Below the pieces are notes generated by a model, which saw nothing but the letters and a program-made list of their open reading frames with translations, made no database searches and was not told the DNA's origin. Shown here in pieces: positions 2,400 through 61,234 of a DNA stretch of 64,000 nucleotides. The position numbers and the translations under genes are program-made. Positions within the stretch are counted from its first letter, which is position 1. Each line of letters opens with the position of its first letter. This DNA comes from Adineta vaga (taxonomy: Eukaryota; Animalia; Rotifera), in assembly GCA_021613535.1 (NCBI GenBank), contig CP075493.1, positions 744,001 to 808,000 on the forward strand, in the 5' to 3' direction.

Positions 2400-2629
2400 A
2401 TCAGAAAGAAATTTTTCAATTATTCATTACATATTTATGTTGTGATGTTTCTCATTAAATAAAAATAATTGAGCTAATAATAGTAAATCTTAAAAACGTT
2501 GAATTGAAAGAAAAAAAAGCTTTATTTGTATTTATATTAGTTGAATGAGAATTTCTAAATATGACGCAGTTCTTTCCTCTTGTTTTGCACCAAAGATAAT
2601 ACTTTTAAGTGTATATATGAAGATTTTAT

Positions 2630-3382
2630 TTATGATGATGATGATGATTCACTCTGTTGAAGTTCATTCCAAAACTTTTTGATATTTTCAAGTGCAATGA
2701 CTTGTTTGTCTTGTGGAAAAGTGACTAAATCCCAATTTTCATTACAATTTTCATCTTGACAAACAAATGGCATTTTCTTTAACTCTTCTTGTTTAGTTTC
2801 ATTAATCCAGTCAATTGATTTGTCAACAAGAACTTGTAACATATGACGAACTACGGTTTGTTCTGCTTCACTCCAATTTTTATCATGACTTTCTATCAAA
2901 GCACCCGTAGTACATTCAATATGACTATTGAGAATAGTTGAAAAAAGTAATGGCATATAATGAGATCTAGTACACATAATCAAACAGCCAAGATGTTTTG
3001 GACCAGGAATAGAATTTGAACAACTATCTTGAAATATTTTATTGAAATGACTAAAAGCATAATGATCACCATTTAAATCTAATGCTTGTTTTAATGAAAT
3101 ATTTGAATCAATATAAACATTTTGATACGCATAACAAAATGCATCACAATTGTATTGAACATATTTTTCAAGAAGATAATACATTAATTCTAGGGATGTT
3201 TCCTTATTTTCTGAATTAAAAAATATAGCTATTGATTGATTTGGAGTTAGTTTCTTCATATCACATAGATATCGTAAAGAATTCATTAAAATACCAACAG
3301 TGGCTTGATTAATATAATCCAAATACATTTGATTTTTACTAATTGCAGCCATTACTTTTTCTTCTTCTTTGACAGTAGCCAT
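2630..3382 (-). CDS. Hypothetical 250-aa intronless protein, no recognised domain
   Basis: Long ATG-initiated ORF with normal globular composition in AT-rich DNA, where chance ORFs are short. Confidence 0.7.
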   Translation of the reverse strand: MATVKEEEKVMAAISKNQMYLDYINQATVGILMNSLRYLCDMKKLTPNQSIAIFFNSENKETSLELMYYLLEKYVQYNCDAFCYAYQNVYIDSNISLKQALDLNGDHYAFSHFNKIFQDSCSNSIPGPKHLGCLIMCTRSHYMPLLFSTILNSHIECTTGALIESHDKNWSEAEQTVVRHMLQVLVDKSIDWINETKQEELKKMPFVCQDENCNENWDLVTFPQDKQVIALENIKKFWNELQQSESSSSS

Positions 3383-4782
3383 TAAAAATAACTCTTATTA
3401 TGTAAAAGCGTTTGATAATCGTTGAAATATAATCGCATACTTATATGTTTGTTTTCGATGAATAATTGATTGCGAAATGATACATTACATCACCTTTGAT
3501 TAATGGTTGGAAAAATAACTTACCTGATTGTTTTATGACGCACATCAAATTATGTCATCGAAATAAATATTTTTTTGTTCCTCTACTTCCTTTATATTTT
3601 CGATACGGTGTTCATTCATCTTCATCTTCTACATTCATATAATGAAATTTTCTATCACAAACATCATTCCCAGTCAAGACACAACGATCATGATCTATCA
3701 TTACAACTTGCCAGGAATCGGTAACATATGTGATATGTGATAATCTAACGATTCTCACAGGTAATATAAATGATTAATTCATAAAAGTGAAGATGAGAGT
3801 ATTGTAATTGTTTTCAATCATACACATATCCTATCGCTCTAAATGGCTTGATCATCTGAATGTGTTCCATTGCATCAAGAAATTGACAAAATGTATTTCT
3901 TTTGTTATCAGTTGCGTTAACATCAAAATCACAATCGACTAACAATTGAAGGATTTCATGACGAAAAAAACTATCAACATTTCTTTCGATAATTTATGGA
4001 ATACCTATCAGTTTTCGATTTGTAATAGTTTTATACGAAAATGTAACTTACAAAATAAATGTAAAAATGTTGAACGATGTAATTTCATATAATCGTTGTT
4101 GTTCATTTTCTTGAAAATGATAAATAATTCATTGATTTCTTGTCAATATGACCTTTGTAGAAAAGTAAATTTAATATAAGATTGTTAATATAATTTGATA
4201 ATATGCATATTCAACACGTGCATTTGGCGTTTTAGTTAACTTTCGATATAAAGTTTACCAAGACAATATATCATGAAATTAGATTCAAAAACTTTGATTG
4301 ATTCCCTGATAGGAATCCGATTAGAGTCTGACAATGAAAATAATAAAGAGTATTGTGTCAGTCAGAAACTGTTAGATATTTATTGATATCCGATTGTCAT
4401 GCGGAGTAATATAGACTATGGTTAACATTATTAAAAGATATACTGTTATTTCATATCAATAATTAAAATGCACACGTGAAACCACCTTACAACATTAGAT
4501 TTCACCACGCATATTTTACACAACTTTGCTTTGATTCAACACTTTTTATGCATCTTTTCAAGCATCTAAACGTATCGAAAACCAGAATATTATTTCATTT
4601 CTATAATGCCTTTATGCAATGTAACAGGAAACGTGTTAACGAAAATTAAAATTCTGGATTGAGTTTACTATTTCAATACAACATAGATTGTAATAGAGAA
4701 AAAGAATCGTTAAAATTACCAAATTGAGTGATATATTAAAATACACAGATCAGATAGTTTCGAATATGATTTTGTTCAACTT

Positions 4783-4970
4783 GAGTGTGGGTGTGGGTTA
4801 AGAGTAAAGCCTGACCCACACCCACACCCTAAAAAAGTTCGGTACAAGATCATCTCCAAGTACATCTCGTTCTTGTAAAACTACATATAGATCTCCATTT
4901 ACAGGATGGGTGGGTGTGAGTGTGGGTGTAGAGAGAGATGACTCCTTCATCTACACCCACCCACCCTCAC
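4783..4970. repeat. Two short inverted-repeat hairpins built from TGTGGG/CCCACA units
   Basis: 4783-4830 reads GAGTGTGGGTGTGGGT...ACCCACACCCACACCC; ~4908-4970 reads GGGTGGGTGTGAGTGTGGGTGTAGA...TCTACACCCACCCACCC. Confidence 0.65.
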
Positions 4971-5482
4971 TCTCAAGAAGCCGATATTCGTCACATTTAT
5001 CCCTAGCTACATTTTCATCCTCATTCATCTGCACCTACATCCTCGCTGTCACTCACATCATTCTTTTCTTTCTCCTATGTTTTCTCTCACTTTCAGGGAT
5101 AAATTCCTAGCAATTATCTTGCACGATTGCTTCTCTTCTTATTTTTTCCACGGCCTTTAGTAGATATAAAACAAGTTACCGCTTTCTATTTTGACAGATA
5201 AATTCATTTATTTAGATAGTTGTCCTCTACAATGAATTCATGACAGAATGAACTGACACGAAAATAATTTATAATAAGTGCAAAAAAAAGAGAAACTTCT
5301 AAAGAGCATGTGAAAGAATTTGCTGATCAATGCACAGTTAGTTTGCTAGTTTAATTAATATGTCGACTTCTTCTATTTTATGAGTATTTTCGTTAACGTA
5401 AAGTGTTTGTTTTATCATATTGAAATTTTTGTCTAGTATTGTATAGATCGATTCATTATTATTTTAAGTGAAAACAATTAGC

Positions 5483-6487
5483 ATGTCATTATTATATATT
5501 AGTCAACAAATTATCGTTTATGTTGGTTTGTCTATTCTCGTCTTAGGAGTAATTGGTAATGGTTTGAATACGTTAGTATTTTTAAGTGTTCGTACTTATC
5601 GTACAACTCCTTGTACATTTTATTTTCTGATTAATTCTATTAACAACAGTCTTTATATTGCAGTCAATCTTATAGCTCGCGTTGTGAGTACAGGCTTCGG
5701 AATCGATTTGACTCGAACATCATTGGTTTGGTGTAAAACACGAAGATATCTTCTTGTCGCTCTTAGTTTGATTTCTTTCGCCTGTACCTGTTTGGCTACA
5801 ATTGATCAGTTTTTCGTCACATCAAGAAGTGTTTATCTTCGAAGTTTAAGCAATATCAAATGGGCACATCGAATTGGACTCATCGTAGTTATTGTGTGTT
5901 GTCTTTATGGTGTTCCTAGTCTTGTATATCTGAATATTTCACCAATCACGCAGACATGTGTAAACATCAACACTGTTTATACTATTTATCTTCCAATATA
6001 CTCGCTCAGCTTCACTTATTTTATTCCAGTTTTAACAATGGTTCTGTTTGGATATCTAACGTATCGGAATATCCGTCAGACAAAAGCTCTTGCCGAACAA
6101 CAAGCTGATCGTCAATTAATAAGAATGACTTTAATGCAGATCATCCTTGTTGTTATTTCACAAACACCATATGGCATTAACAATATTTACGGTTTGATCA
6201 CATCAACAATGAGGAAGGATGCAGATCGATTGCTCACGGAATCGGTTGCAGCAGCACTGGTTGCTCTATTAACCTATGTCTACTATGCCGTATGTTTATT
6301 CATTTTTTGTTATATAATTAAAAGAAGTCTTTTTTAGAAATGTTGCTACATATTTTTGATTGTATCAAGTCGTTTTCGTCGAGCAATAAGAGTCCGAGTC
6401 TTATTTTGCCGAAAACCAAATCAAATCATTCCAGCTGAAAGATCTGGACGTGGAAGTGTAACAATAAAAAATACAGTGAATAATTAG
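5483..6487 (+). CDS. Rhodopsin-like (class A) orphan GPCR, 2 exons
   Basis: Seven hydrophobic segments, TM1 GN motif, TM3 CLATIDQF (DRY variant). GT-AG intron at ~6290-6337, then exon KCCYIFLIVSSRFR...stop at 6487. Confidence 0.85.
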
Positions 6488-7150
6488 AAAAACAAGATCC
6501 TGAATTTAATATCTCTTTTGAATTAGTATTGAAATAAAAAGTCATGTTATCGTATGGAAATCGAACTAACGAGAGAACTTCCCCAGGTGTTCAAGCGTTT
6601 TAGGGCCCATCTTTTGACGGTAGGCGGACCTCAACGAGGTATGAAAAACCTCAAGAGGATTCGTGCGCTCGCGGCTTTATTCCTGAGATATCGAATTTTC
6701 AAGATACATATGAAAAGGGACAGAAATGAAGAATGATCGTTTTTGGAGAACAGTAGAGTATTCTGATGGAAATTTTTGAAAGCTTCACGCAGCGCTCGTG
6801 TGGCCTGCTCTAGATTGAGGGTGACATCATATCTTATCAGTACCACGTCTATTGACTGTTCATTTCATATCTGATATCATTATACACTAGAAAGAATGAT
6901 TGATGGAAGCGGATGGTATACCATCGATTATCTTTTCGTTCTCCTCGGTAGCATACCACCATGCCTGTCTGATATATATGGGATGCACGTGTTCTTTGTT
7001 TACGTTTCTCTAGTCGTCCTCTCCTCTTGTTTTCTCTCGCATGTCGGATTCATGCCATGAGGTCGTTTTTCTCTTCATTCAATTGTATACGATATACAAG
7101 TAACGTAACAGCAAACTGTCGATATCAGTTTTCCTCACGTTTATTCCAAA

Positions 7151-26193: not shown

Positions 26194-27582
26194 TTAAATA
26201 GATTCTTTTCTAAAGTCATTTGGTTTATTGATATTTTGTTGATATTGAACATATTTTTCATCTCGTTTTTTTAAATAAGAATTATTTTGAATTTCTAAAT
26301 TTCCAGCTAATTGAGCCATTTTTCTCCAATCAGAATATGAAAATGTTGGACTTGAAACGACATGTTTAATTCCATATTGTTGAATTCGATCAATTTCATC
26401 ACAAACACCTTGATCTGATTCAATTAATTTTAAATGATATTTTTGTTCATATAAAGGTGTTCCACGTAATAACATTAATGGAAATGCATGAATAATTTGA
26501 ACATGATGTTTTAAACAAAATTCAATTGATTTTTCAAATGATTCAATTGTTTGTCCTGGTAAACCGAAGATAAGTGAAATTTCACATTCAATAGATTTTT
26601 CATAAATTTCATTTAAAATTCTTTGAATTTTTTTCATATTTGAAGGTCGATCAATAAATTTTTGTTCATTAGGATGAATTGTTTGCAAACCAAATTCTAA
26701 AACAACCATTGCTGTTTGATTTAATTGAACAATAGCATTAATAAATTCTGGTTTAATCATTTCTAAACGTGTTTGTAAAGTGATTTTTCCTTGATATTTA
26801 TATTGAATTAATTGTTGAAGAACATTTAAATAATTTGGACCAGAATTAAATGTTGGATCAACTAAATTTAAATCAATAACTTTTGATTCATTACGACATA
26901 ACCATTGAATTTCTTTGGAAATTCTTGTTAATTCAAAATGTCTTCGTGTTAAATTTGTTGATTCACGATGTTGACAAAAACTACATGAAAATGGACAACC
27001 ACGTTGTGTTTCCCAACGAAGAAAACGTTGATTAGGAATTAAATTCTTCAAAAATGGTGATGGAAGTTCATTAAAATTTGTTTTTGCTGATTGAACTTGA
27101 TCAATTTGTCCTGCATAATGAATTCCTTGAATTTGTGGATAACGATTTTGTATTTGTTGTTGCATATATTGAAGAAGAGCAGTTTCACCATATCCTCGAA
27201 TAAAAACATCAACTTGAGGATAAAATTTTTCTAAATTTTTTTTCGTATAACTTATTTGTGGTCCACCAAGAATAATTCGACCAGGATATTTTTCTTTTTT
27301 TAATTTATTTAAAATTATTTGTAAAAATTTTTCATTCCAAATAAATGCACCTAATGCAACATCAGTTGATTCATTTGCATTTTTCATTATATAATTTGTA
27401 ACATCATCTGGATGAAAAGAAGAAAAATTAACTGCATATGATTTCGATAAAACATCAATATTATTTTCATATAAATTTGCTAATATTGATGATTGTCCTA
27501 AGGATATTGGAGGATCTTTTGTTTTCATATAATCTAATGCAATTAATATTAAACGTTTTGTTGGAAATTGAATTGGTCTCAT
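26194..27582 (-). CDS. Bacterial-type B12-binding-domain radical SAM protein, intronless
   Basis: CxxxCxxC motif (RGCPFSCSFC). N-terminal cobalamin-binding-like segment (GAFIWNE...IILGGPQISY...FIRGYGE), plus DPTFN, EFGLQT, IFGLPGQT and LRGTPL. First ATG at 27582. Confidence 0.88.
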   Translation of the reverse strand: MRPIQFPTKRLILIALDYMKTKDPPISLGQSSILANLYENNIDVLSKSYAVNFSSFHPDDVTNYIMKNANESTDVALGAFIWNEKFLQIILNKLKKEKYPGRIILGGPQISYTKKNLEKFYPQVDVFIRGYGETALLQYMQQQIQNRYPQIQGIHYAGQIDQVQSAKTNFNELPSPFLKNLIPNQRFLRWETQRGCPFSCSFCQHRESTNLTRRHFELTRISKEIQWLCRNESKVIDLNLVDPTFNSGPNYLNVLQQLIQYKYQGKITLQTRLEMIKPEFINAIVQLNQTAMVVLEFGLQTIHPNEQKFIDRPSNMKKIQRILNEIYEKSIECEISLIFGLPGQTIESFEKSIEFCLKHHVQIIHAFPLMLLRGTPLYEQKYHLKLIESDQGVCDEIDRIQQYGIKHVVSSPTFSYSDWRKMAQLAGNLEIQNNSYLKKRDEKYVQYQQNINKPNDFRKESI

Positions 27583-28129
27583 TTTAATAGAAAATAATGA
27601 CTCACTTTTGATGACGATAGACGATGTTTTTGTCTTATGGCGACACAACGAAACGAGAAGAGAATGTTAAGATATTTATTCATTAATACAACTGGGAATT
27701 TTCCCAGTTGAATGATTGTCAAATAGAATAAACTATTTTTTTTTATTGAATTATCTTATATTATCATTAGATTATATCTAAATGAATATTCTTATATAAG
27801 ATTATTTAACATGATTCTTAATTCGAAAAAAATGATTTAACTAATTGACCTTTTGTCTACACTTTTATATTAAATATATTATATAAAACATCATATTCAT
27901 ATTATTTTGAAAAATGTTCATTTCCTTTAATAATTAGAATCACAAAAGTCTTTCCTTTGAAAAAGAAAATATATAAATATATTTCACACTCTCACAATTT
28001 GTTTTTTCTAAAATCAAACAATTCATTACCGTTGTCAAATGATTTTTTAGATACTTCAGAAGAAAAAACAAAAATAATGTTTTTTTTTTGTTTTTATTAA
28101 AATTATTCAAACAGATGTTTATCAATCTG

Positions 28130-32937: not shown

Positions 32938-35900
32938 TTAACAGTTTCCATTTAATACAGCAGATCCATTAGAGCAACCAGCACATACGTAATATGGATA
33001 TCCATTACCAAGTGGTAAACACACTCCACCGCGACCTGCTGAGTTACAGTTAATCGACGGTGTACAAGGATTACCTATCAAAGAACACAAAATGAATCAT
33101 GCTATGTGAAAAATAGAAAAAGCTACCTAGACATGGATTATTCAGGCCATTTACACCGTATATACAGCCAGTACATTGATAGCTGCTGGTTCCATTAGCA
33201 ATTGCCGTACAATTACCACCACCACCAAGTTGTGCGCAGTTAGCACCCGTGAGACAAGGATTCCCTGTTAATGAGAGAGAGAATATAAGTCACTTTGTTC
33301 GATAAATGGTTTACTACTAATTACCTGGACATGCAGTGTTGTTTGTAGCAGGACCATAAGTACATCCAGTGCATTGATAATTTCCAGTTCCATCACCAAA
33401 TGCAACGCAACTACCCCCACCACTATTAGATGTGCAAGGAGTCGCCGACAAACAAGGATTCGCTAGGAATGATATAAAAATGAATCATATCATCTTTTAA
33501 GTGATTTACAATCCACTTACCTGGACATGGATTATTATAGGTATTTGAACCATATTTACAAGCAACACAGTGATAGTTTGTAGTTCCATTACCAATCGCC
33601 GCACAAATACCGCCACCACCAAGTTGTGTACAATTAACCGTCGTCGAACATGGACTCGCTGATATTTACAAAGGGACAAATCATATTATATGATAAATGT
33701 GTACAGCTAGTTACCTGGACATGCAGTGTTGTTCGTATTGGAACCATAACTGCATTCGGTACATTGGTAGTTGCCACTTCCGTCAAACGTAGGCAAGCAA
33801 TTACCGCCACCACCAAGGCTAGTACAGACACCTCCCATAAAACATGAATCCGCTAGAAATGAGAAATTCAAGTGCCTTCTAGGTAACCATATTGAGGGTG
33901 TGAATGTAAGTATCTATTGTTCAACTAAACACTCAACTCAGAGATTAATAAAATCGAAACTATTTTCTACAAGTGTGATCACGAAACATTCATTTAACTA
34001 TAGAACCACACATCTCAATACAAAACTAATCTGAGAAAATAATGGTCAATATCTTCTTATATGTAACAACCTAATTTTCTACTATGACATACAACATCAT
34101 ATGTATTTTCCTAAAACCTTATCCACACTCCTTCTAACTATAGCTAGGAAGAAACTAAATAACAATCTTGGGAGATTAACTTCACTTACTAGTAGTAGTT
34201 GCACTAGTGGTAGTAGTTGAGGTGGAACTAGTACTGGATGTAGAACTGGTACTTGAAGTCGAACTAGTGCTCGATGTGGAGCTAGTTGATGTAGTGCTGG
34301 TGCTTGAAGTCGAGCTAGTACTCGATGTGGAACTAGTTGATGTGGTGCTGGTGGTTGATGTAGAGCTCGTACTTGAAGTTGAACTAGTGCTGGATGTGGA
34401 ACTGGTGCTCGATGTAGAACTAGTTGATGTAGTGCTGGTGCTTGATGTGGAGCTCGTACTTGAAGTGGAACTGGTTGACGTAGAGCTTGTACTTGAAGTC
34501 GAGCTGGTACTTGATGTAGAACTAGTGGATGTTGTGCTGGTGCTGGATGTGGAGCTGGTACTTGAAGTAGAACTGGTTGACGTAGAGCTGGTACTTGATG
34601 TAGAACTAGTTGATGTTGTGCTGGTGCTGGATGTGGAGCTGGTACTTGAAGTCGTACTGGTACTTGATGTAGAACTGGTTGACGTAGAGCTGGTACTTGA
34701 TGTAGAACTGGTTGACGTAGAGCTAGTACTCGATGTTGAACTGGTGCTCGATGTGGAACTAGTTGATGTGGTGCTAGTGCTTGATGTAGAGCTCGTACTT
34801 GAAGTTGAACTGGTGCTGGATGTAGAACTGGTGCTCGATGTAGAACTAGTGGATGTAGTGCTGGTGCTTGATGTGGAGCTGGTACTTGAAGTAGAACTGG
34901 TTGACGTAGAGCTGGTACTTGATGTAGAACTAGTTGATGTTGTGCTGGTGCTGGATGTGGAGCTGGTACTTGAAGTCGTACTGGTACTTGATGTAGAACT
35001 GGTTGACGTAGAGCTAGTACTCGATGTAGAACTAGTGCTGGATGTGGAACTAGTTGATGTAGTACTGGTGCTCGATGTGGAACTTGTTGATGTGGTGCTA
35101 GTGCTTGATGTAGAGCTTGTACTTGAAGTGGAACTCGTGCTGGATGTGGAGCTGGTACTTGAAGTAGAACTGGTTGACGTAGAGCTAGTACTCGATGTAG
35201 AACTAGTGCTGGATGTGGAACTAGTTGATGTAGTACTGGTGCTAGATGTGGAACTTGTTGATGTGGTGCTAGTGCTTGATGTAGAGCTTGTACTTGAAGT
35301 GGAACTCGTGCTGGATGTGGAGCTGGTACTTGATGTAGAACTGGTTGACGTAGAGCTAGTACTCGATGTAGAACTAGTGCTGGATGTGGAACTTGTACTT
35401 GAAGTCGAACTGGTACTTGATGTAGAACTGGTAATTGAGGTAGAACTGGTACTGGATGTAGAACTACTTGATGTGCTGGAGGTTGATGTAGTTGACGTTG
35501 AGCTGGTGCTTGTGGTGATTTCGACTGAGGTTGAGGTTGTGTAGGTGGTTGTTGTGCTAACAGTTGATGTTGTGGTTATCGTGTTTTGTGTTGTTGAATG
35601 GTTAAGTGATGAATTGGATGATGCAGTGATTGTTGATGTCATAGTTAGATTGGTGTCTACTGGTGTACTATCGGTTGATATATTTGTTCGAAAAGTTGTC
35701 ACTGTTGCTGTTGAAGTTGTTTCTGCTGGGTTTATTAAAAGAAGTAATAATGGGTATTGTTTATATAATGGCAAGGATATTTTCCTACTTGTAGTTGCTG
35801 AATACTTGCTGGTCGTGACAACTATGGGCACAAGAAGTGTTACGGTGAATACAACCACACCGACCGCCGCAGCAACACCAGTCAAAAGTTTGAATCGCCG

Positions 35901-36038
35901 AGTCCTTTTTGTTAGAAACAAGGATACAAGGCATCAATGATAAAATTACGATGCTTACCATCCAATGTGCTGCACTGAAACTAGATGGTTTTCAATTGGA
36001 TTTATAGGTGACATGTTAATTTCTTCTTGAAAAGCCAT
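32938..36038 (-). CDS. Type II membrane mucin-like protein: TM anchor, ~450-aa Ser/Thr stalk, five exon-encoded EGF-like Cys repeats
   Basis: ATG at 36038, TM exon ~35905-35790, (TSS)n exon to ~34190, then five similar exons (e.g. DSCFMGGVCTSLGGGGNCLPTFDGSGNYQCTECSYGSNTNNTACP) ending at TAA 32938. Confidence 0.75.
34190..35520. repeat. Coding 9-bp-period tandem repeat (Thr-Ser-Ser)
   Basis: ACN-TCN-AGY units with variable third positions and longer duplicated blocks. Confidence 0.9.
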
Positions 36039-42396: not shown

Positions 42397-45300
42397 ATGG
42401 AACAACATGTTCAATCAAATGAATTTTTCGATATTAAACAACAAATTCCTCAAATAGAAACTATAGAAAATAATCAAAATAATTTGACTGAAATATCAAC
42501 ATTACCATCGGATTTGTATGTTTTGTTTGTTGTTGTTTACAAATTTTAAAAATGATTTTATTTTACTTTTAGAAAATGTTTTACTTTTTTAATATCAAGT
42601 TCAATCATTCATATTTTAACATTTTCATTTTTATTATGTATTATGATGATCAGTGGAATTATTATTGTTTATTTCAATGTTCCAAAACCAAAAGGTTTGT
42701 TTGTTTTGTTTTGTTTTTTATTATAGAAAATGTTTATATTAAACTAATAAAATACTTTTAATTTATTTTAGAATTGACATGTCAAATAAATTTTATAAAA
42801 ATCCCTAAAAATCCAATTGAATATGAATATGGTCCACGATCTATTGCTGTTGGTGATTTTAATGTTGATAGTTGGATTGATATGGTTGTTTGTAATTCAA
42901 TTATTAATAATATCGCGATTTATTTTGGATCAATCGATGGTATTTTTACTAAAGAATATCAATATTCAACAGGAATTAATTCAAAACCAATTATGGTTGC
43001 TGTAAATCATCTAAATAATGATTCTTATTTGGATATTGTAGTAGCAAATTATGGAACACATTCAATTGGAATATTTTATGGATTTGGTAATGGATCTTTT
43101 AAAGATCAAATTAAAATTTCAACAGGAATATCTCATCCATTAACAATTAATTTAATTGATTTAAATAATGATACATTCATTGATATTATTATTATTAATT
43201 ATGGTACAAATAGTTTTACGATTTATTATGGAAGTGAAAATGAATTTTATTCAAAATCGATGACTTATTCAACTGGTTATGATTCTTATCCATATTCATT
43301 AACAATTGCTGATTTAAATAATGATTATCAATTAGATATTATTATTGCAAATTATGGAACAAATAATATTGGAATTTTCTTTGCTAATCAAAAAAATAAT
43401 TCATTTGAAAATCAAATACTTATTTCAACTGGAATTAATTCTCATCCAACTTCTGTTGCTATTGGAGATTTAAATTCTGATCAATTTATTGATATTGTTG
43501 TTACAAATTATGGTACAAATATGATTTGTATAATGTTAAATGATGGAAATGGAATATTTTCAAAACAAACATTCTTTTCAATTGATTCAGCTTCACCATA
43601 TTCAATTGGTATTAATGATTTTAATGGAGATAATCGATTAGATTTATTTATTATTAATATTGGAAAGAATAATATTGGTTTATTTCTTGGTTATGGTAAT
43701 GGAAGTTTTCAAGAAGGAAGAATGAATTCAACGGGATCTTATTCAACAATTTCATTTGCTTTATATGATATTAATAAAGATAAAAGATTAGATACAATTA
43801 TTGTTAATAATGATACTGAAAGTATTCATATTCTTAAAGGTTATTTTGAAGGTTTTCCATATCGTACAACATATAATGTTCAATATCCAACAATCTTTAT
43901 AATTATTAATGATTTTAATAATGATACGATATTAGATATGATACTTATTAGTGAGATAAATGATACAATGATAATTTGTCTTGGAAATGGTGATGGATCA
44001 TTTGGAAGTCAAATAATATATTCAACTGGCTCTAATCCAACATCTACAGCTATTGGTGATTTTAATAATGACATGAAAATGGATGTCGTTATTACTAATA
44101 TGAATAGTGATAATATTTATGTATTTCATGGAAATGGTAATGGTTCATTTATATCTCAAAATACATATTCAACTGGTTCTAGTCCAATTTCTGTAGTTGT
44201 TGCTGATTTGAACAATGACAAACGATTAGATATCGTTGTTGCTAATTATGATCACAATACTGTGAGCATTTTTTTAGGATATGAAAATGGATCCTTTAGA
44301 AATCAAATGACATATTCAACGGGTGCTAATCCACGATCTGTTGCTATTGCTGATTTTAACGATGATCAATATCTTGATCTAGTTGTTACCAATTATAATA
44401 ATAGAACTATAAGTATTCTTCTTGGATTTGGTAATGGAAGTTTTGCAAATCATTTCACCTATCCAACTGGTTACCATCCGTACTTTGTAGTAGTTGATGA
44501 TTTTAATAATGATAATAAAATAGATATTGCTATTGCCAATTATGGTAGTAATACTGCAAGTGTTATGTTAGGATATGGTAATGGAAGTTTTTCAGAACAA
44601 ATTACACATGCAACGGGTGTTGCACCATCATCTATTAGTATTGCTGACATGAATAATGATACGCAATTAGATCTTGTTGTCGCTTGTGCTGGTTCGGTCA
44701 ATATATATATTTTATTTGGATATGGAAATGGTTCTTTTACTAATGCAATGTCATACTACATAAATATGAGGTCACATTCTCTTGCCATTGGTGATCTAAA
44801 TAATGATTCACGATTGGATATCATTGTAATACAAAATAGTAATATTCATGTAGGTATATTACTTCAATATAATAGAGGTGCTCTTATAAATGAATTGACT
44901 TATGCAGCTGGTGGAGGTTCTAAACTACGATCGATAATTGTCCATGATATAAATAATGATACTCACTTAGATGTAATTGTGGCGAATTATGGTACTGATG
45001 ATGTTGGCATTCTTTTAGGTTATGATAATGTTAATTTTATTGATCAAGTAATGATTAATATGGGTTCTGATTCTCAACCATCATCAATTACAGCTGGTCA
45101 TTTTAATGATGATATCTACTTGGATATTGCTGTAGCTCTTTCTGGCTCTAATCAAATTGGATTATTACTTGGAAATGGCCATGGATCATTTACTCGTCAA
45201 GCTACTTATCAAATTCCTTCCATATTTCCTCCTGTCATTGTCTCTGCTGGTAATTTTAATAATGATGAACAATCAGAAATTATCGTTGGATATGATGATA

Positions 45301-46973
45301 GTGATACTATTGATATCTATGTTATCTATAACACTGGATCTTTTACACTTCATGAAACATATTCAGTTGGTTTACATCCAAGATATTTATGCTTAGATTA
45401 TATTAATAACGATACTTACATTGATATTGTTGTTGTCAATATTGATTCCGATGATATAAATATTCTTCTTGGATATGGTAATGGTAGTTTTGCACAACCA
45501 ATGACTTATGCAACTAGTGCTCGGCCAAATTCTGTTGCTACCAGTGATTTTAATAATGACAATCGAATTGATCTAGTTGTGACTAGTTCTGTTAATCATT
45601 ATGTAAATATATTTTTAGGATATGGAAATGGTAGTTTTGCGAATCCTATAACATATTCGATTGGTTCTGGCTCACGACACTTAGCTGTGGGTGATTTCAA
45701 CAATGATAGACGACTAGATCTAGTTATTATCACTGCGAAATATGATATCATTCTATGTCAAGGTATTAATAATGGTTCTTTTTCAAATGGAATTACAATT
45801 GCAACTACCGACGACCCACGATACGTGATTGCAGCTGATTTTAATAATGATAATCGATTAGATCTTGCTGTTGTTAATTATGGTCTTGATAATGTAGGCA
45901 TTTTTATTGGTTATGCTAATGGTTCTTTTGAAAAACAAGTCAAATATTTAGTTGACGTCAATCCATTTGCATTAGCAGTTGGAGATCTAAATCTTGATAA
46001 TCAGTTAGATATTGTTGTAACTTCAATAGGTTATAATAAAATAAATATTCTCCTTGGTTATGGTAATGGATCTTTTACAAGTAAAATACTATTTTCAGTT
46101 AGTATTCTTCCAGAATCTGTAACTATTGGTGATTTGAATAATGATGGTTATCCAGATATAATTGTTACCAATTTTGGTAGTAATTCTATTAGTGTTCTAT
46201 TAGGATATGGTAATGGATTATTTACAAATCAAATTATATATACAGTTGGTTCTGGTCCACAATTTGTCGTTACTATTGATTTGAATAATGATACTTATCT
46301 CGATATTATTATTGCGAATGGAGGTGATTGTACTTTAGTTGTTATGTTTGGTTGTTCAAATTTAATCTTTCGAAATCAAAATACACTTTCAACTGGTAAA
46401 AATTCACGATCACGATCATTTGTTATTAATGATTTCAATAATGATAATTATACAGATATTATCGTAGCTAATTCAGGTACTGATAACATTGGTATTTTTC
46501 TTGGATATGGAAATTTCTCTTTCACAAATCAAACAACATATTCAACTGGTAATAATTCTTCTCCATATTCTATTACAACTGGTGATTTAAATAATGATAA
46601 ACAATTAGATATTGTTACTGCAAATTCAAATTCAGATAACATTGGTATTTTTCTTGGTTATGGAAATGGTTCATTTACGAATCAAATAACATATTTCACG
46701 GGTTCATCTTCATATCCTTATTCTGTAGCTATTGGTCATTTTAATAATGATACAATACTTGATATCATTGTTGTTAATTATAATAATAATAAATTTGGAG
46801 TTCTTCTTGGATATGATGATGGAACATTTAATAATATAATTTTCTTTTCAATGCCATATGGATCGAATCCATTCTCTCTAATCCTTGCTGATTTTAGTAT
46901 GGATGGAAAAATGGATTTTGCAGTTGTAAATAATGGTACAGACAATTTAAATATTTACTTACGTACTTGTTAA
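42397..46973 (+). CDS. Type II membrane protein with a long FG-GAP/VCBS repeat array
   Basis: Two short 5' exons (42397-~42516; ~42573-42693 with a TM helix) and one 4.2-kb exon with >20 repeats of GDFNND..LDIVVANY...I.LGYGNGSF. Confidence 0.88.
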
Positions 46974-54881: not shown

Positions 54882-55257
54882 CTAGTATAAGTTTTATTTA
54901 ATAGAATTTATTGAAAATAATCTCATATATTATATTATAGTTCGTTATTATTCTCAATAGAAATAAAGAAAATAAAAATGAATATTTAAGACTTATGATG
55001 CAGTTGATCGTACTTTTCAATGAATACCTGGAGAAATTTTTATAATAGAAATATTCTAAAGAAAATAAACGGGGTGATTCGATAAAAACTCATCAGGAGA
55101 TCTTTAATAGAGAATCAATCAGAATATAATAAAAAATAAGAATATTTTGTTTTTCGTATTTTTCCCAATAATACGAATACAAAAAGAAAAAGAGGGACAA
55201 ATTATACAGTTAAAAGTAGAACGAAATTGTAATTATGAAATTGATTTTCTTTTTATT

Positions 55258-56214
55258 TTATAATAATTTTAATATTTGTTCACAATTCAAAAAACAAACG
55301 TTAGGCATTTTTTTAATCGTTTGAAGAGCTTTTTTCAAATGAAAAGCTTTTGCTGGTGTACCAATAATAAATGTATGCAATCCTAAACATATAATTTTAG
55401 CTTTTTTTGTCTTTTCTGTAACTAATTGTTCAATATAATCTATTATTGTTTGTGCATATTGTTCACCCGTATAACCTTGACACATACATAATGATATATC
55501 ATTTGTTTCCATTGAATAAGGTAGAACTATTAATTCTTTTTCTTTTTCATTCGATGATTTTAATTTATATAAAACATCATCATTTGTCGCATCTAATGAT
55601 AAACGTATACCATTATCAACTAAAAATGGAATATATTGATTAGAATCGTTTCAATTCATTTTTTAGAAAATTAAATGGTTTCAGAATACATGGAATAATA
55701 CTATAAATTGATCTTTACCTAAGATTTTTGTTGAATTATCTGGTGCAGAAAATCCTGGAGTTAACCATGCTTTTGGTCTTTGTTGATGTCCTAATGCTTG
55801 TTCAATTTGATCTAAAGATTGTTTAACTTGTTCTTCAAAAGATATATGTTTTACAGCAGATAGAGAATTTGTAAGACCATGACCTATAATATCAATATTT
55901 TGGTTTTCTTTTGAATATATTTTTATTTCTTGAAATAGATCTGTTTCTTTATCAATTAAATATGAATTCATTGCAATACTAACTGGTATTTGTAAATCAG
56001 AAAATATCGTAAGAAGACGATTTGTTCCTTGTCTATTACCATAATCACGCCAACCACTATTTGCAATATCTGGTATAAGATTACTTAAATGTGGTTGAAT
56101 ACAAGGACCTCCATGACCATTTATAAATACTTCAGAATTTATTATTGGAACAACAGCTACTTTACAATCATTTAACCAATGAGTTAAAGAAATCTCTTCT
56201 CGTATATCGAACAT
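55258..56214 (-). CDS. PuuE-like carbohydrate-esterase-4 (polysaccharide deacetylase fold) amidohydrolase, bacterial type, 2 exons
   Basis: INSE, NSGWRDYGNRQG, IGHG, PKAWLTPG, NDD, PYSMETND and LGLHTFIIG motifs. Intron 55718-55620 restores a 285-aa frame. Confidence 0.85.
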
Positions 56215-56400
56215 ATCATAAAACTAAAAATATAGAATAATATCTACAATTAATGTAAAGTACAAATTAGCAAATATGAAATTGATAATACATCTGAATT
56301 TACTTTGAAATTCTTTTTATTTTATCTAGTTGGTTTACTTCTACAGTTACATAGATAAATACACGAACTTTTCATTTACTTTTTGTTGATAAATATCAAT

Positions 56401-56560: not shown

Positions 56561-57425
56561 ATGAATTCTCTATTAAATGTTCGCATATCAGTAGTCTTTT
56601 AGGTGATACAGAATGTATATTTACTTTGATAAAGCTTTTTTAAAAAAGAATCATGCAAGGTCGTTATATAGGTATGATAATAATTTCATTCACACAATAA
56701 ACGAATTCTTGTGTTATCGGCATCAAACAACATATGTGTATGTTATTTATTACTTGTTAATATCCTGCAAAGAGTAATTACCAACAGTAAATTACTAAAT
56801 AATTGAGATTTCATTAAGATTTACTAAAATTTCAAGAAGACATGCCTCGAATCTGGACGTTCGAGTTCGTTGAATTTGAGTATTGACCTTGAGTTGAGAC
56901 TTTGACATTAATAAAAAAAAAAGTACTAGAAGTTAGGCAAATGCAGTAATTTTAGAATTTACTACTATAATAAATTTGAATACAATAAGATGAATGACCC
57001 GCAATCTGAAGATCAGGAACTATCAAAAAATAAACTAATGGTGTCTAAAAAATCTTCAATCGAATCTGATCGAATTTCAAGTTATTTTTCCAAAGTGATT
57101 ATACATTAATAGTTGCAACTCTTATTAAATTTTGAAAGGCTATCAAAGATTTTTTTAATTAAATTCTGCGTAGATTGCATATAGTTTATATGCATACAAT
57201 GCACAATAAAGAGGGAAAGCGTGGGCACCTGATTCGCACTTTCGTCCTTGGGCGCGATCATTATTGTTCAATTTGTCACGAAATATGTATTGATTCTAGG
57301 TTATTTAGATATCTATGAAGTTTATACGCGTATTATATATTTACCTATTCATTCTCAGAAATTATCCAATTTTTTTTAAATAGTTTTCATTCCACTACTT
57401 TTCATCAATAATTATTTCTTTTCAG

Positions 57426-58299
57426 GTTCTAATTCAACATTTGCGGTTCCTACGTGCTCATATGAGGAACTTGAAGATGGGTATGGAACCATTATTGGAC
57501 CTATGTCGGCTAAAAAACGTGAAGGTCTAACAATTCCATTTTATAAAAATATTGTTGAAGGAAAAAATTTTGATTTTGAATGTCGTCCTCCAGTAACATG
57601 TCGTGCGGCAGAAATTCATTTTAAATCAAATAAAGAAACACTTTGGTTAGAACGACATATGCATTTAACTCAATTATTTATTGGTCTGGGCGGAAAAGAT
57701 CCATTTATGATGGTTTTAGGTAAACCAACACATAATCGAACGGATTTAAATGAAGAACAAAGAGCTCTACCTGATTTAAATAATGTTAAAGCTTTTATTG
57801 TACCAGCAGGTAAGATGTTATAAATTTTACTTGTATAATCATTATCTTAAAGATTAGAGATTTCTATCTAGCTTTGAATAATCTCCAAAAGATATGTCTA
57901 CCTTAATCTAACAATCTGAATCCGTGTTCTAATGTAACAAAAAATGCGCGGGGATAAAATATTTTTTTTGCTTTGATGTCTATCCTCATCACTATTATGA
58001 TCGAGCCTTTAACTTTAATGAATCTTTATTATTTTGTATTTTTTTTTGTGTGTGTAGGTTGTGGTTTAATTCTTCATAAAGGTACCTGGCATGATTTTCC
58101 AGTCAGTATTGGGAATTCTATAACTGTTTTAACGTTTAATAGTGCAGAGGTAGTTGAAGCTCTCGCTGCTATGCCTGCACCAGGTGAAATGCTTGGACAA
58201 GGTGATGTTTACAAAATTAACCTTCCGCAACGTCTTGGCCTAACAGTTACGTATAATTTTGAAATAACAACAACAACAAATAACGAAAAAGAAACATAA
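57426..58299 (+). CDS. Ureidoglycolate lyase/hydrolase-like cupin protein (AllA-like), spliced; first exon not located
   Basis: WLERHMHLTQLF, VKAFIVPAG|CGLILHKGTWHDFP. Exons 57426-57809 and 58058-58299 join in frame. An acceptor AG at 57424-57425 implies an upstream exon, or the start is ATG 57503. Confidence 0.78.
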
Positions 58300-58807
58300 T
58301 AATTGATGAAAATAATACAAATCAAATCAAATCAACTATTTATACTTATTTTACCCTGAATTTCTAGATTTCTATATCTGTAATAGCATAAACTTGTTAT
58401 TCAATAGATTTACGCAATCATAAAACATTTTCTTCATACTTTGTACATGTGAATAAACCACTATGTTTGTCATACATTGTCAATAGAGATACACGAATTC
58501 CAATTAACAGGATATCAGCCCTGACTGAAACTGGACGTATTTCTAATCGTCATATTGTCCTTGTGGTAACCATATTTTATGTCCAATGGGCATTATTGAA
58601 GAATATAGACTAGTTAACATCATACACACTTAAGCTCACGATTACAATACTTTATAGTTCTACACACATTGCAATCGCATACAAAGAAAACTTCTATAAT
58701 AGTAATTAGGATACTTCTATTGGTCTTTATGATAGATCAATAAATAGTTATAATAAAACAAGATTATGCTTCTTTTTTTATAGTTCCAAGTAGAAGATTT
58801 TAAGACA

Positions 58808-59485
58808 TTATTTCAAGACGTTGAGCACTTTATCTGATTGTGATACCCAACCAAATATACCTCCTTGAGCCTTGATCATATCGAGAGCTGCTACTTGAAA
58901 CTTAGGAAAGTATGATCCAACACAATCTTCAAGAACAAGACATTCATAGCCTCGATCATTAGCTTCACGTACAGTAGTATTAACACAGACTTCAGTGGTG
59001 ACTCCGGTGACGATCAGTTGCTTAATATTGTAATTGTTAAGAATCGTATTGAGATCTGTCGCATAGAATGCACCTTTTCCACATTTATCAATAATTGGTT
59101 CGTCAGGTAATGGATAAAGTTCTGGAATAATATCATGTCCAGGTTCACCTCGCACCAAAATGCGACCCATTGGACCAGCATCACCAATGCACATAGTACT
59201 TCGACCGCGAATCTTCTTACTTAATGGAAGATCAGATAAATCTGGCCGATGACCTTCTCGAGTATGTACGATTTTTAAGCCAGCAGCACGCCATGCTGCC
59301 AGTAGTTTCTGGTTTGGACTAATTGTTCGACGAAGTTGTTCCACATCATTACCCAACATTGCACCAAAACCACCGGGTTCTAAAAAATCGCGTTGCATGT
59401 CGATAATCAATAATGCGCATTGACTTGGTATAAACTCGAATGCATATGGCTCAGCTGTAACGGTTAAAGTTTTATTAATATCCAT
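58808..59485 (-). CDS. trtA: Isochorismatase-family cysteine hydrolase, triuret hydrolase (TrtA)-like, intronless
   Basis: D-K-C triad motifs (IDMQRDF, IDKCGKGAF, TTEVCV), HTREGHRPDLSD and REANDRGYECL. Specificity positions read GGF/LGND/TTE/SYFP/QGGI (TrtA type), not GGY/MGYD/TTD/ATD/QGGV (BiuH type); compared from memory of those sequences. Confidence 0.82.
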   Translation of the reverse strand: MDINKTLTVTAEPYAFEFIPSQCALLIIDMQRDFLEPGGFGAMLGNDVEQLRRTISPNQKLLAAWRAAGLKIVHTREGHRPDLSDLPLSKKIRGRSTMCIGDAGPMGRILVRGEPGHDIIPELYPLPDEPIIDKCGKGAFYATDLNTILNNYNIKQLIVTGVTTEVCVNTTVREANDRGYECLVLEDCVGSYFPKFQVAALDMIKAQGGIFGWVSQSDKVLNVLK

Positions 59486-59642
59486 TTTAACGTTATGTTT
59501 TTGCTATATCAAATCCAATTTAGAAGATTATTCTAAAAAAGCAAAATCTGAAATAATTTAATAGAGAACACTTCATATAAAGTTTTAATCTTCAAAATAC
59601 TCAACAAAAAACAGTGTGGTTGTGAATATATACTACTACGTT

Positions 59643-60062
59643 CTAGCTTTTAATGAAATCAGTATGCACACTGACATGAGCAGCAACAATTTTCCAGCCA
59701 TTACCAACATCTAAATCCGATCCTAATCTAGCCCAGGTTTGCATTTGTCGGCCACATACTGGTTTTTCGACACCATTGCTAAACTCCGTACTGACTGTTG
59801 CGAAGTCATTACCAAACGTCGTAATTATTGTACGATGAAGTTGTCTTTCAGCTGGTACTGGCTGTGCAGTAGTGCGCCACTGATAAATTGCCTCTACGCC
59901 ATGTTGAATATCGGCAATACCATAACGAACCGTTTCAGGCGCATTCCAAAACATTAGATTCATTGTATTTACATCATTATCTATCAGAGCTTGTTCATAC
60001 CTGGTAAATGCTGCCTTTACTTGCGCAACCACTTCATGTTTGTTAATTTCAAACGTCATCAA
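59643..60062 (-). CDS. AtzH/HpxZ-like (DUF3225, SnoaL/NTF2 fold) protein, intronless
   Basis: V.AAF.RYEQAL..NDV, FW....TVRYG, ITTFG.DFA....EF, GRQMQTW and WKIVAAHVS motifs. Confidence 0.88.
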   Translation of the reverse strand: MMTFEINKHEVVAQVKAAFTRYEQALIDNDVNTMNLMFWNAPETVRYGIADIQHGVEAIYQWRTTAQPVPAERQLHRTIITTFGNDFATVSTEFSNGVEKPVCGRQMQTWARLGSDLDVGNGWKIVAAHVSVHTDFIKS

Positions 60063-60539
60063 TTATTATAGAGCTGGTTAAGTATTGAATTTTTTTCCTG
60101 ATTTCAACAATTCTAAATAGATTACCATACGCAAATGTTAACGTTGATTGTGAATCAAATTTTTATGTCACAATGTTGGACGAAACTCGAATCTAAACTA
60201 ACCTTGATTTTATTCGTCCACGTTGATAAACAATGTGACTCGTTTGCTTTACGAAAGAATATGAAAAATTTGTCTTAATAAGTGTATATATAAGAACATT
60301 TTTTTTTAAACTTTTTATTGTTCTTTTATCTTAAAATTATTTTATTTATTACTTGAAAAACGTTTAAGATATAAAACTAAGAGTATCAATGAGAATAAAA
60401 GATGCAGGTGTGGAAAAGTTTCATAACCTAAAATAATATTATAAAAATCTAGTAATGCATTCTTTAACACGATCATTTAAAAACTAAGCAATTAAATTTT
60501 TCAATTTTGTTTTAATTCATCTAGGTTTTCTACCTCTTA

Positions 60540-61234
60540 TCTATATATATAAAGAAGAAAGTTTGTCTGTCTGTCTGTTCGCTATGCGTTCAGTCCTTGT
60601 AAAAGCTAATGTCACCAAACCTTCCACAATGCTTCTTTAGGTCCAGAGGAAGGTCGACATGGGGTTAGAATAGTCATCGAGGGATGAGGGTGGGGCGTTG
60701 GTGTCTGCATCTACGATGGACAACTGCAATGCCTGAGTTGGATTCTCGGAAAAAACTGAATCTGAAGTGAAATGACTACTCTAACTGTATGGAGTCAAAG
60801 TGAAGGTTATAAACTAGAGAATGACTTGCAGCGAGCGTCTGAAAATAGGCAGATCTATTGAGGGGTGTGAGTTGCAGCGGGACAATAGGAGTGGATTTAA
60901 AAGGAACAGAGCTGTATATCGTATGCATAGCGAGACAAGACCAGTAGGAAAGAACTAATAAAGAGGTGCGGAAAGTTCTGAAAAAAAGACCTGATATATG
61001 ACGTGAAAAGGGATATAGGAAGGTTTCAGTACGGAGGTGAAAGACAGGTAACTCGTACTGAGTGGCAACCTGAAGGATTACAGTGGCTAAGGCAGAACAG
61101 GAAAGGAGAGTGTGAGAGTTTTTTGATACACGACGGGTAAATACCAACGGAGAGGTCCAATGGGTGATGAGAAAAGCACTACTGTAGATGAAAAACGTAA
61201 ATTGTGTTCTTTTTGCAACGGGTATCTCCGCTAG
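60540..61234 (+). mobile_element. Non-autonomous Helitron-like element, 695-bp intact-ended copy
   Basis: A|TC 5' end and GGGTATCTCCGCTAG|T 3' end; homologous to 24535-25485. Confidence 0.78.

Follow-up and report, generated by a model that had tools for sequence, protein, structure and literature searches.

Gene content of the locus

The window analysed in this study is a stretch of 64,000 nucleotides of the Adineta vaga genome (C1:744001-808000), situated on an 18.1-Mb contig of a 100.8-Mb genome in six contigs, and it encodes GPCRs, TPR proteins, FG-GAP repeat proteins and F-box-like proteins, which are typical of bdelloids. Amid these genes lies a minus-strand gene (Table 1) whose frame runs uninterrupted from ATG to TAA over 225 codons and whose product matches the Pfam family Isochorismatase (PF00857, E 1.2e-44). 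One copy of the gene is present in the haploid assembly, and its orthologues in Adineta steineri (88% identity), A. ricciae (81-84%), Rotaria sp. (84%) and R. magnacalcarata (79%) are publicly named just "Isochorismatase-like domain-containing protein", which is as far as the first-pass annotation of this DNA had expected automated annotation to go.

The gene is flanked upstream by a TrtB-type gene and on its other side by a ureidoglycolate-lyase-like gene, followed by a divergent PuuE-like polysaccharide-deacetylase gene. The two spliced neighbours were searched exon by exon: the ureidoglycolate-lyase-like gene has introns at 56738-57425 and 57812-58061, and the PuuE-like gene has one at 55620-55718, the joint of which is found in three RNA-like runs and is absent from the DNA-like run. 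The same order of the four genes was observed in A. ricciae (L112), where the unit formed by the TrtB-type, TrtA-type and ureidoglycolate-lyase-like genes is tandemly duplicated. The TrtB-TrtA pair keeps its adjacency and its order in both A. steineri and A. ricciae, and is not adjacent within 9 kb in Rotaria sp. Directly upstream of the pair in A. vaga, the region 60517-60900 reaches a depth of 2450-6500 in the genome-like run X9 versus about 100 nearby, which indicates a high-copy repeat. Other long open reading frames in the window include 26194-27648(-) of 484 aa, 34182-35921(-), a 579-aa Ser/Thr-repeat frame, and 42774-46973(+), a 1399-aa frame of tandem repeats that read as FG-GAP/VCBS-like.

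Table 1. Genes and transcript features around the TrtA-type gene, in coordinates of the window.
Feature	Position	Strand	Evidence and remarks
CDS, TrtA-type isochorismatase-like cysteine amidohydrolase (predicted)	58808..59485	-	225 aa, single exon; ORF, Pfam/NCBIfam, TrtA residues, trees, model and Foldseek
3' UTR of the TrtA-type mRNA, minimum extent from RNA contigs	58702..58807	-	contigs X1, X2, X11
CDS, TrtB-type (AtzH/HpxZ family, PF11533), putative carboxybiuret decarboxylase	59643..60059	-	138 aa from ATG; upstream of the TrtA-type gene
3' UTR of the TrtB-type mRNA	59547..59642	-	poly(A) site 59547; ATTAAA 59558-59563
Ureidoglycolate-lyase-like gene	57426..58425	+	exons 57426-57811 and 58062-58425, 5' exon 56704-56737; Pfam PF04115 23 bits on exon 1; spliced contigs
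PuuE-like polysaccharide-deacetylase gene, divergent	55243..56245	-	exons 55719-56245 and 55243-55619; weak Polysacc_deac_1 and allantoinase PuuE TIGR03212 matches

Family assignment and predicted structure of the 225-aa protein

In the PDB sequence search, the 225-aa protein scored 268 bits against TrtA (6XIX), versus 244 and 238 bits against BiuH (6AZO and 6XJM), and its best solved relative was TrtA of Herbaspirillum sp. BH-1, with which it aligned over 209 residues without gaps. By name, its top NCBIfam match was the BiuH equivalog NF050097, and the score of 280 bits lies below the cut-off of 370, so that the protein falls outside BiuH by this model. Overall identity was 55-58% to TrtA, 55% to Rhizobium BiuH and 50% to the GuuH of pMET-2; raw identity thus fails to tell TrtA from BiuH, the lead of TrtA being bare.

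The AlphaFold2 model of the rotifer protein (pLDDT 86.5) predicts a two-strand N-terminal sheet (strands 7-9 and 16-18, local pLDDT 95), a feature that is present in TrtA and lost in BiuH (PMC7948467). When the model was submitted to Foldseek, ranks 1-6 were all TrtA chains, with TM scores of 0.87-0.92. Judged from these comparisons and from the residues described below, the product is probably a cytosolic TrtA-type cysteine amidohydrolase with triuret as its predicted substrate.

TrtA signature residues

The catalytic triad of TrtA consists of D24, K129 and C162, its ligand is contacted by E72, K132 and Q202 from the partner subunit as well as by F29 and the V157-T158 cis-peptide, and six sites (F35, N41, A134, E160, Y187 and I205) differ between the TrtA and BiuH consensus (PMC7948467). 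The rotifer protein is numbered as TrtA plus 5. Its triad D29/K134/C167 corresponds to that of TrtA, the substrate-contact residues F34, E77, K137, Q207 and V162-T163 are all kept (in sequence, the cis geometry being conformational), and the six sites read F40, N46, A139, E165, Y192 and I210, 6/6 of them TrtA-type. The first-pass annotation had described an intact 225-aa frame with an Asp-Lys-Cys triad and a TrtA signature carried by the motifs GGFGAMLGND, TTEVC, SYFP and QGGI, together with an odd DKCGK. This description was borne out: the frame is stop-free, all five motifs are found, the catalytic, binding and discriminating residues are all TrtA-type, and the protein lies outside the BiuH clade. 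Its six diagnostic sites were likewise all of TrtA type, but its list held L (TrtA L39) where the paper has A134. The L39 site discriminates as well, with L in 86/86 TrtA-type proteins and M in 34/35 BiuH proteins.

These counts derive from 86 bacterial loci, two near-duplicate pairs included, that encode a protein 68-80% identical to the rotifer protein, and across which the pattern F/L/N/A/E/Y/I is essentially invariant. At 35 of the 86 there is a second isochorismatase-like gene, whose product shares 70-80% identity with the BiuH crystallised from Rhizobium; these co-located BiuH proteins read Y/M/Y/S/D/T/V, so that 7/7 discriminating sites differ from the rotifer protein. With this seven-residue signature, proteins of rotifers and of many soil bacteria that are now entered as "isochorismatase-like" can be renamed.

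In the 86 relatives, 114 positions show a conservation of 95% or more; the A. vaga protein keeps 113 of them, and the sole change is P130C, which accounts for the DKCGK reading and is real. The cysteine stands directly after the catalytic lysine in all four Adineta copies, and proline occupies this site in Rotaria and in every bacterial relative, the replacement being specific to Adineta.

Phylogenetic placement

A 57-row maximum-likelihood tree was computed under a mixture model. Herbaspirillum TrtA was represented in the trees by proxies, the trtA genes of Rhizobium 3841 (L026:16400-17068, 282 bits to 6XIX), Paraburkholderia (L118:8339-9004, 318 bits) and Cupriavidus, which together span 282-318 bits to 6XIX; trtA of Rhizobium 3841 is named in PMC7948467. 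The reference BiuH (L026:13092-13793) is the crystallised Rhizobium enzyme, at 544 bits to 6AZO. BiuH formed one clade (96/92 support) from which the rotifer protein is excluded, and the rotifer sequences formed one clade (100/99) with a bacterial metagenome protein as sister (95/88). The reference trtA genes made up a long-branched clade (100/99) nested in the TrtA-type assemblage that holds the rotifers, the branches joining the rotifer protein with them being weak (53/73 to 73/89). When RutB served as root, it sat on a very long branch and the TrtA-type proteins became a grade, not a clade. Because of this long branch, we claim from the trees only a placement outside BiuH and among TrtA-type proteins, and make no claim as to whether TrtA or BiuH is ancestral. 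The first-pass annotation had proposed an alignment with characterised TrtA, BiuH and GuuH and had named clustering with BiuH as the result that would speak against it; in the alignment the rotifer protein is TrtA-type and distinct from BiuH and pMET-2 GuuH, and no such clustering was seen.

The TrtB-type neighbour

The product of the upstream gene matches PF11533 at 147 bits (2.5e-43) and the NCBI HpxZ model at 139 bits. The gene is the single PF11533 copy in the genome and evolves with a dN/dS of 0.10-0.19. The trtB, atzH and hpxZ genes belong to one homologous family of about 126 residues (PMC12625717 Fig. S11), and since the HpxZ model also matches trtA-adjacent bacterial proteins, the HpxZ name is not specific. 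The nearest bacterial kin of the rotifer protein (64-66% identical, from Cupriavidus and Paraburkholderia) directly follow trtA, in operons with the order atzF, bmp ABC transporter, biuH, ABC ATPase, trtA. A tree labelled with gene neighbourhoods placed the rotifer clade in a group (93 SH-aLRT) that contains 5/5 trtA-adjacent and 2/2 biuH-adjacent bacterial proteins and 0/22 atzE-adjacent ones. The trtB gene co-occurs with trtA and is described as encoding the decarboxylase of carboxybiuret (PMC7948467); the rotifer protein, TrtB-type by homology, is a putative decarboxylase.

Predicted route and fate of the product

We infer the substrate, the products and the physiological role by analogy with Herbaspirillum TrtA, an enzyme selective for triuret whose activity on biuret is about 1e4-fold lower. 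Triuret would be held by Asp29, Glu77, Lys137 and Gln207 of the partner subunit, and Cys167, activated by Lys134 and Asp29, would attack one of its terminal amides, whereupon NH3 would be released and hydrolysis of the thioester would yield 1-carboxybiuret. From carboxybiuret, whose spontaneous half-life is about 20 min, the TrtB-type protein would next remove CO2 and leave biuret.

The genome was searched for enzymes that might take biuret further. The first-pass annotation had noted that the window holds no BiuH-type partner, and the genome-wide search found BiuH neither in the window nor elsewhere in the genome. No AtzE-family amidase exceeded its cut-off genome-wide, the matches being generic amidases (best 121 bits vs 426). 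Allophanate hydrolase and urea carboxylase exceeded their cut-offs at two loci on another chromosome, C6. Urease, the remaining enzyme on the list proposed at first pass, was represented by urease-alpha-like fragments with several in-frame stops (G000:C2:13457461-13459572) and a summed score far below cut-off, which could derive from a decayed gene or from one rich in introns. With regard to the usual partners of trtA, the rotifer thus has a trtB-type gene next door, an atzF-type gene on another chromosome and no biuH. Because neither BiuH nor AtzE was found in the genome, the predicted route stops at biuret and would yield one NH3 and one CO2 per triuret; the biuret may be excreted or handled by an enzyme outside the recognised families. 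These results suggest that the rotifer can break down triuret, a product of urate oxidation, only as far as biuret.

Origin, selection and transcription of the gene

The TrtA-type gene is intact, transcribed and under purifying selection. Pairwise dN/dS among five rotifer genomes was 0.10-0.16 (dS 0.4-1.5). GC at third codon positions is 0.26 in the A. vaga gene and 0.22-0.31 in the rotifers, versus 0.76-0.83 in the bacterial relatives. Taken jointly with the TrtA-type identity of its product, it is reasonably likely that the gene is of bacterial origin, was acquired by an ancestor of Adineta and Rotaria, and is now a normal rotifer gene. Codon usage has been fully rewritten while the protein, with 113/114 positions kept, has remained nearly unchanged after transfer.

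Transcriptome-like contigs from three runs of three studies cover the gene (X1 58702-59328, X2 58750-59448 and X11 58783-59376), the run types as listed being guesses and the contigs carrying neither strand nor expression level. In these three RNA-like runs both flanks of 58702-59448 have little or no depth, and a fourth, genome-like run covers every bin. The three runs were taken as RNA because they show GT..AG joints in both neighbour genes that are absent from the genome-like run, a poly(A) end and letters of a spliced leader. The poly(A) end is that of an X1 contig of the TrtB-type mRNA, which stops at 59547, where it bears a loose stretch of 12 T (plus strand). In X1, the transcript of 55243-56245 also has ACTTACCAAG at its 5' end, letters that form part of the rotifer spliced leader GGCTTATTACAACTTACCAAGAG (PMC3795323). 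The claim made at first pass that the gene is animal-encoded agrees with its position amid bdelloid-type genes on a chromosome-scale contig, next to neighbours that are spliced and of which one bears a spliced leader. At 59533-59546(-), just past the TrtB-type poly(A) site and 48 nt ahead of the TrtA-type ATG, we also observed TTTTGCTTTTTTAG, a possible spliced-leader acceptor whose spacing resembles that of nematode operons.

Bacterial contexts of TrtA-type genes

Among the 86 bacterial relatives, 35 have a true BiuH as neighbour, 21 have AtzF, and 10 have AtzE together with an AtzH-like gene; the order in Terrarubrum is trtA-type, permease, atzF, atzG, atzE, hpxZ. A gene for a 530-556-aa protein annotated as "regulator" adjoins the TrtA-type gene at 68/86 loci (L019-L106; e.g., L024:9712-11313 and L019:9003-10673). 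This protein gave no Pfam, NCBIfam or PDB sequence match; its structural look-alikes in the Atlas include a cluster named "AGZA xanthine/uracil permease" (TM 0.88) and PF00860 (TM 0.58). The structural matches suggest an NCS2/AzgA-like permease, a candidate importer of triuret or ureides; in the rotifer genome, the AzgA-like genes are all distant. The complete TrtA signature also occurs in a cysteine hydrolase encoded on E. coli p1ColV5155 (L025:896-1564), with 78 E. coli plasmid records in PLSDB; its gene adjoins DUF2877, fdrA, DUF1116, carbamate kinase (allFGH/allK-like) and a cytosine permease. Because ColV plasmids carry the same signature in this other context, the signature may not equal triuret specificity everywhere.

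Alternative explanations

A counterpoint to triuret as substrate is that the immediate subclade of the rotifer protein, 78-81% identical across Verrucomicrobiota, Planctomycetota, Chloroflexota and Acidobacteriota, comprises no characterised enzyme, the sole characterised TrtA standing at 55-58% identity. The amidohydrolase may therefore bear the TrtA signature and act on another acyl-urea or ureide, such as formylurea, a carboxylated ureide or an oxidation product of a purine or pyrimidine ring, and perhaps the same holds for the whole conserved bacterial subclade. The purine-type permease that accompanies most of the bacterial genes, the oxalurate-pathway-like genes beside the signature on E. 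coli plasmids, and the divergent ureidoglycolate-lyase-like and PuuE-like neighbours in Adineta all point this way, as does the trace activity of TrtA on formylurea (PMC7948467). Yet the first- and second-shell residues tied to triuret binding are all identical, and many of the same bacterial loci also carry BiuH and AtzF, as a triuret route needs; we regard this explanation as unlikely, though deserving real weight. It is improbable that the protein is a generalist biuret/triuret hydrolase like RhdBiuH of Rhodococcus, which would replace BiuH and feed allophanate made from biuret to allophanate hydrolase. Such an enzyme would suit a genome with allophanate hydrolase above its curated cut-off and no BiuH, single-gene genomes have been proposed to select for generalists (PMC7948467), and P130C of Adineta adjoins the catalytic lysine. 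However, RhdBiuH sits in the BiuH clade with BiuH-type residues, in contrast to the complete TrtA set of the rotifer protein, no single TrtA-to-BiuH mutation raised biuret activity appreciably (PMC7948467), and the Rotaria orthologues retain P130.

Triuret hydrolysis by a TrtA-type enzyme thus remains the preferred reading, and two further explanations fare worse still than a generalist. That the protein is itself a BiuH or GuuH, as its identities to both and the name of its top NCBIfam match might imply, is very improbable given the sub-threshold score, the seven non-BiuH sites, the position outside the BiuH clade and the divergent residues of pMET-2 GuuH listed below. An identity of 76-81% to bacterial proteins could also reflect bacterial contamination of the assembly, or the gene could be a decaying, functionless relic. 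These possibilities are already contradicted, and we consider them extremely improbable: the 18.1-Mb contig has rotifer genes on either side, the cluster is syntenic in three Adineta species, GC3 and dN/dS are those of a constrained rotifer gene, RNA contigs cover it, and its neighbours are spliced, polyadenylated or trans-spliced.

Significance

Triuret has been found in human urine under conditions of oxidative stress and, in crystalline form, in amoebae; to our knowledge no animal enzyme acting on it is known. Our literature search found no paper tying rotifers to triuret. Bdelloids carry thousands of foreign genes, and because of this richness and because the assignment follows from ordinary homology, the surprise is moderate. 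As eukaryotic trtA has already been mentioned in fungi and phytoplankton (PMC7948467), the novelty lies in "animal", not in "eukaryote". The expressed and strongly conserved trtA/trtB pair provides a handle on whether triuret is a real animal metabolite. The physiological logic of the predicted route is incomplete, in that a route stopping at biuret yields little nitrogen. Quite speculatively, the trtB-trtA module may clear a damage metabolite, converting poorly soluble triuret, formed non-enzymatically from urate and peroxynitrite in oxidative bursts at desiccation and rehydration, into soluble and excretable biuret, in which case P130C would add thiol-based redox control; we think this role unlikely, but if true, triuret would count as a physiological metabolite of animals, served by an enzyme of its own.

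Comparison with known systems

The closest characterised counterpart is TrtA of Herbaspirillum sp. BH-1 (PDB 6XIX, 6XJE and 6XJ4; PMC7948467), with which the rotifer protein shares the fold, the D/K/C triad, E72, K132, Q202, F29, the six discriminating sites, the N-terminal beta hairpin (in the rotifer model) and the ungapped alignment. It differs in its overall identity and in the cysteine for P130; moreover, the rotifer gene lies on an animal chromosome, has its own mRNA and no biuH partner genome-wide, and its activity is predicted. As in the trtA operons of Burkholderiales, a trtB-type gene lies next door, but trtB is downstream of trtA in those operons and upstream in the rotifer. BiuH of Rhizobium leguminosarum/johnstonii 3841 (6AZO) is of the same family, has the same catalytic and binding residues and is 55% identical, whereas it reads Y/M/Y/S/D/T/V against F/L/N/A/E/Y/I and belongs to another clade, the rotifer protein scoring below the BiuH cut-off. 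The comparison with GuuH concerns the pMET-2 enzyme of demonstrated activity (BB_00025, PMC9800807) rather than the original GuuH of P. mendocina GU; its residues are Y at the K132 site, E at the Q202 site and Y/M/D/G at F35/N41/E160/Y187, which sets the rotifer protein apart from GuuH. The "cysteine hydrolases" of Verrucomicrobiota, Planctomycetota, Chloroflexota and Acidobacteriota (e.g., Humisphaera borealis P0050 and the metagenome protein P0020) are the nearest relatives and likely the donor pool. They resemble the rotifer protein in identity (76-81%), length and the full signature. Unlike it, they keep P at 130, and their genes are bacterial, rich in GC and grouped in operons that also encode an NCS2-like permease, BiuH, a cupin and a sigma-54 two-component system.
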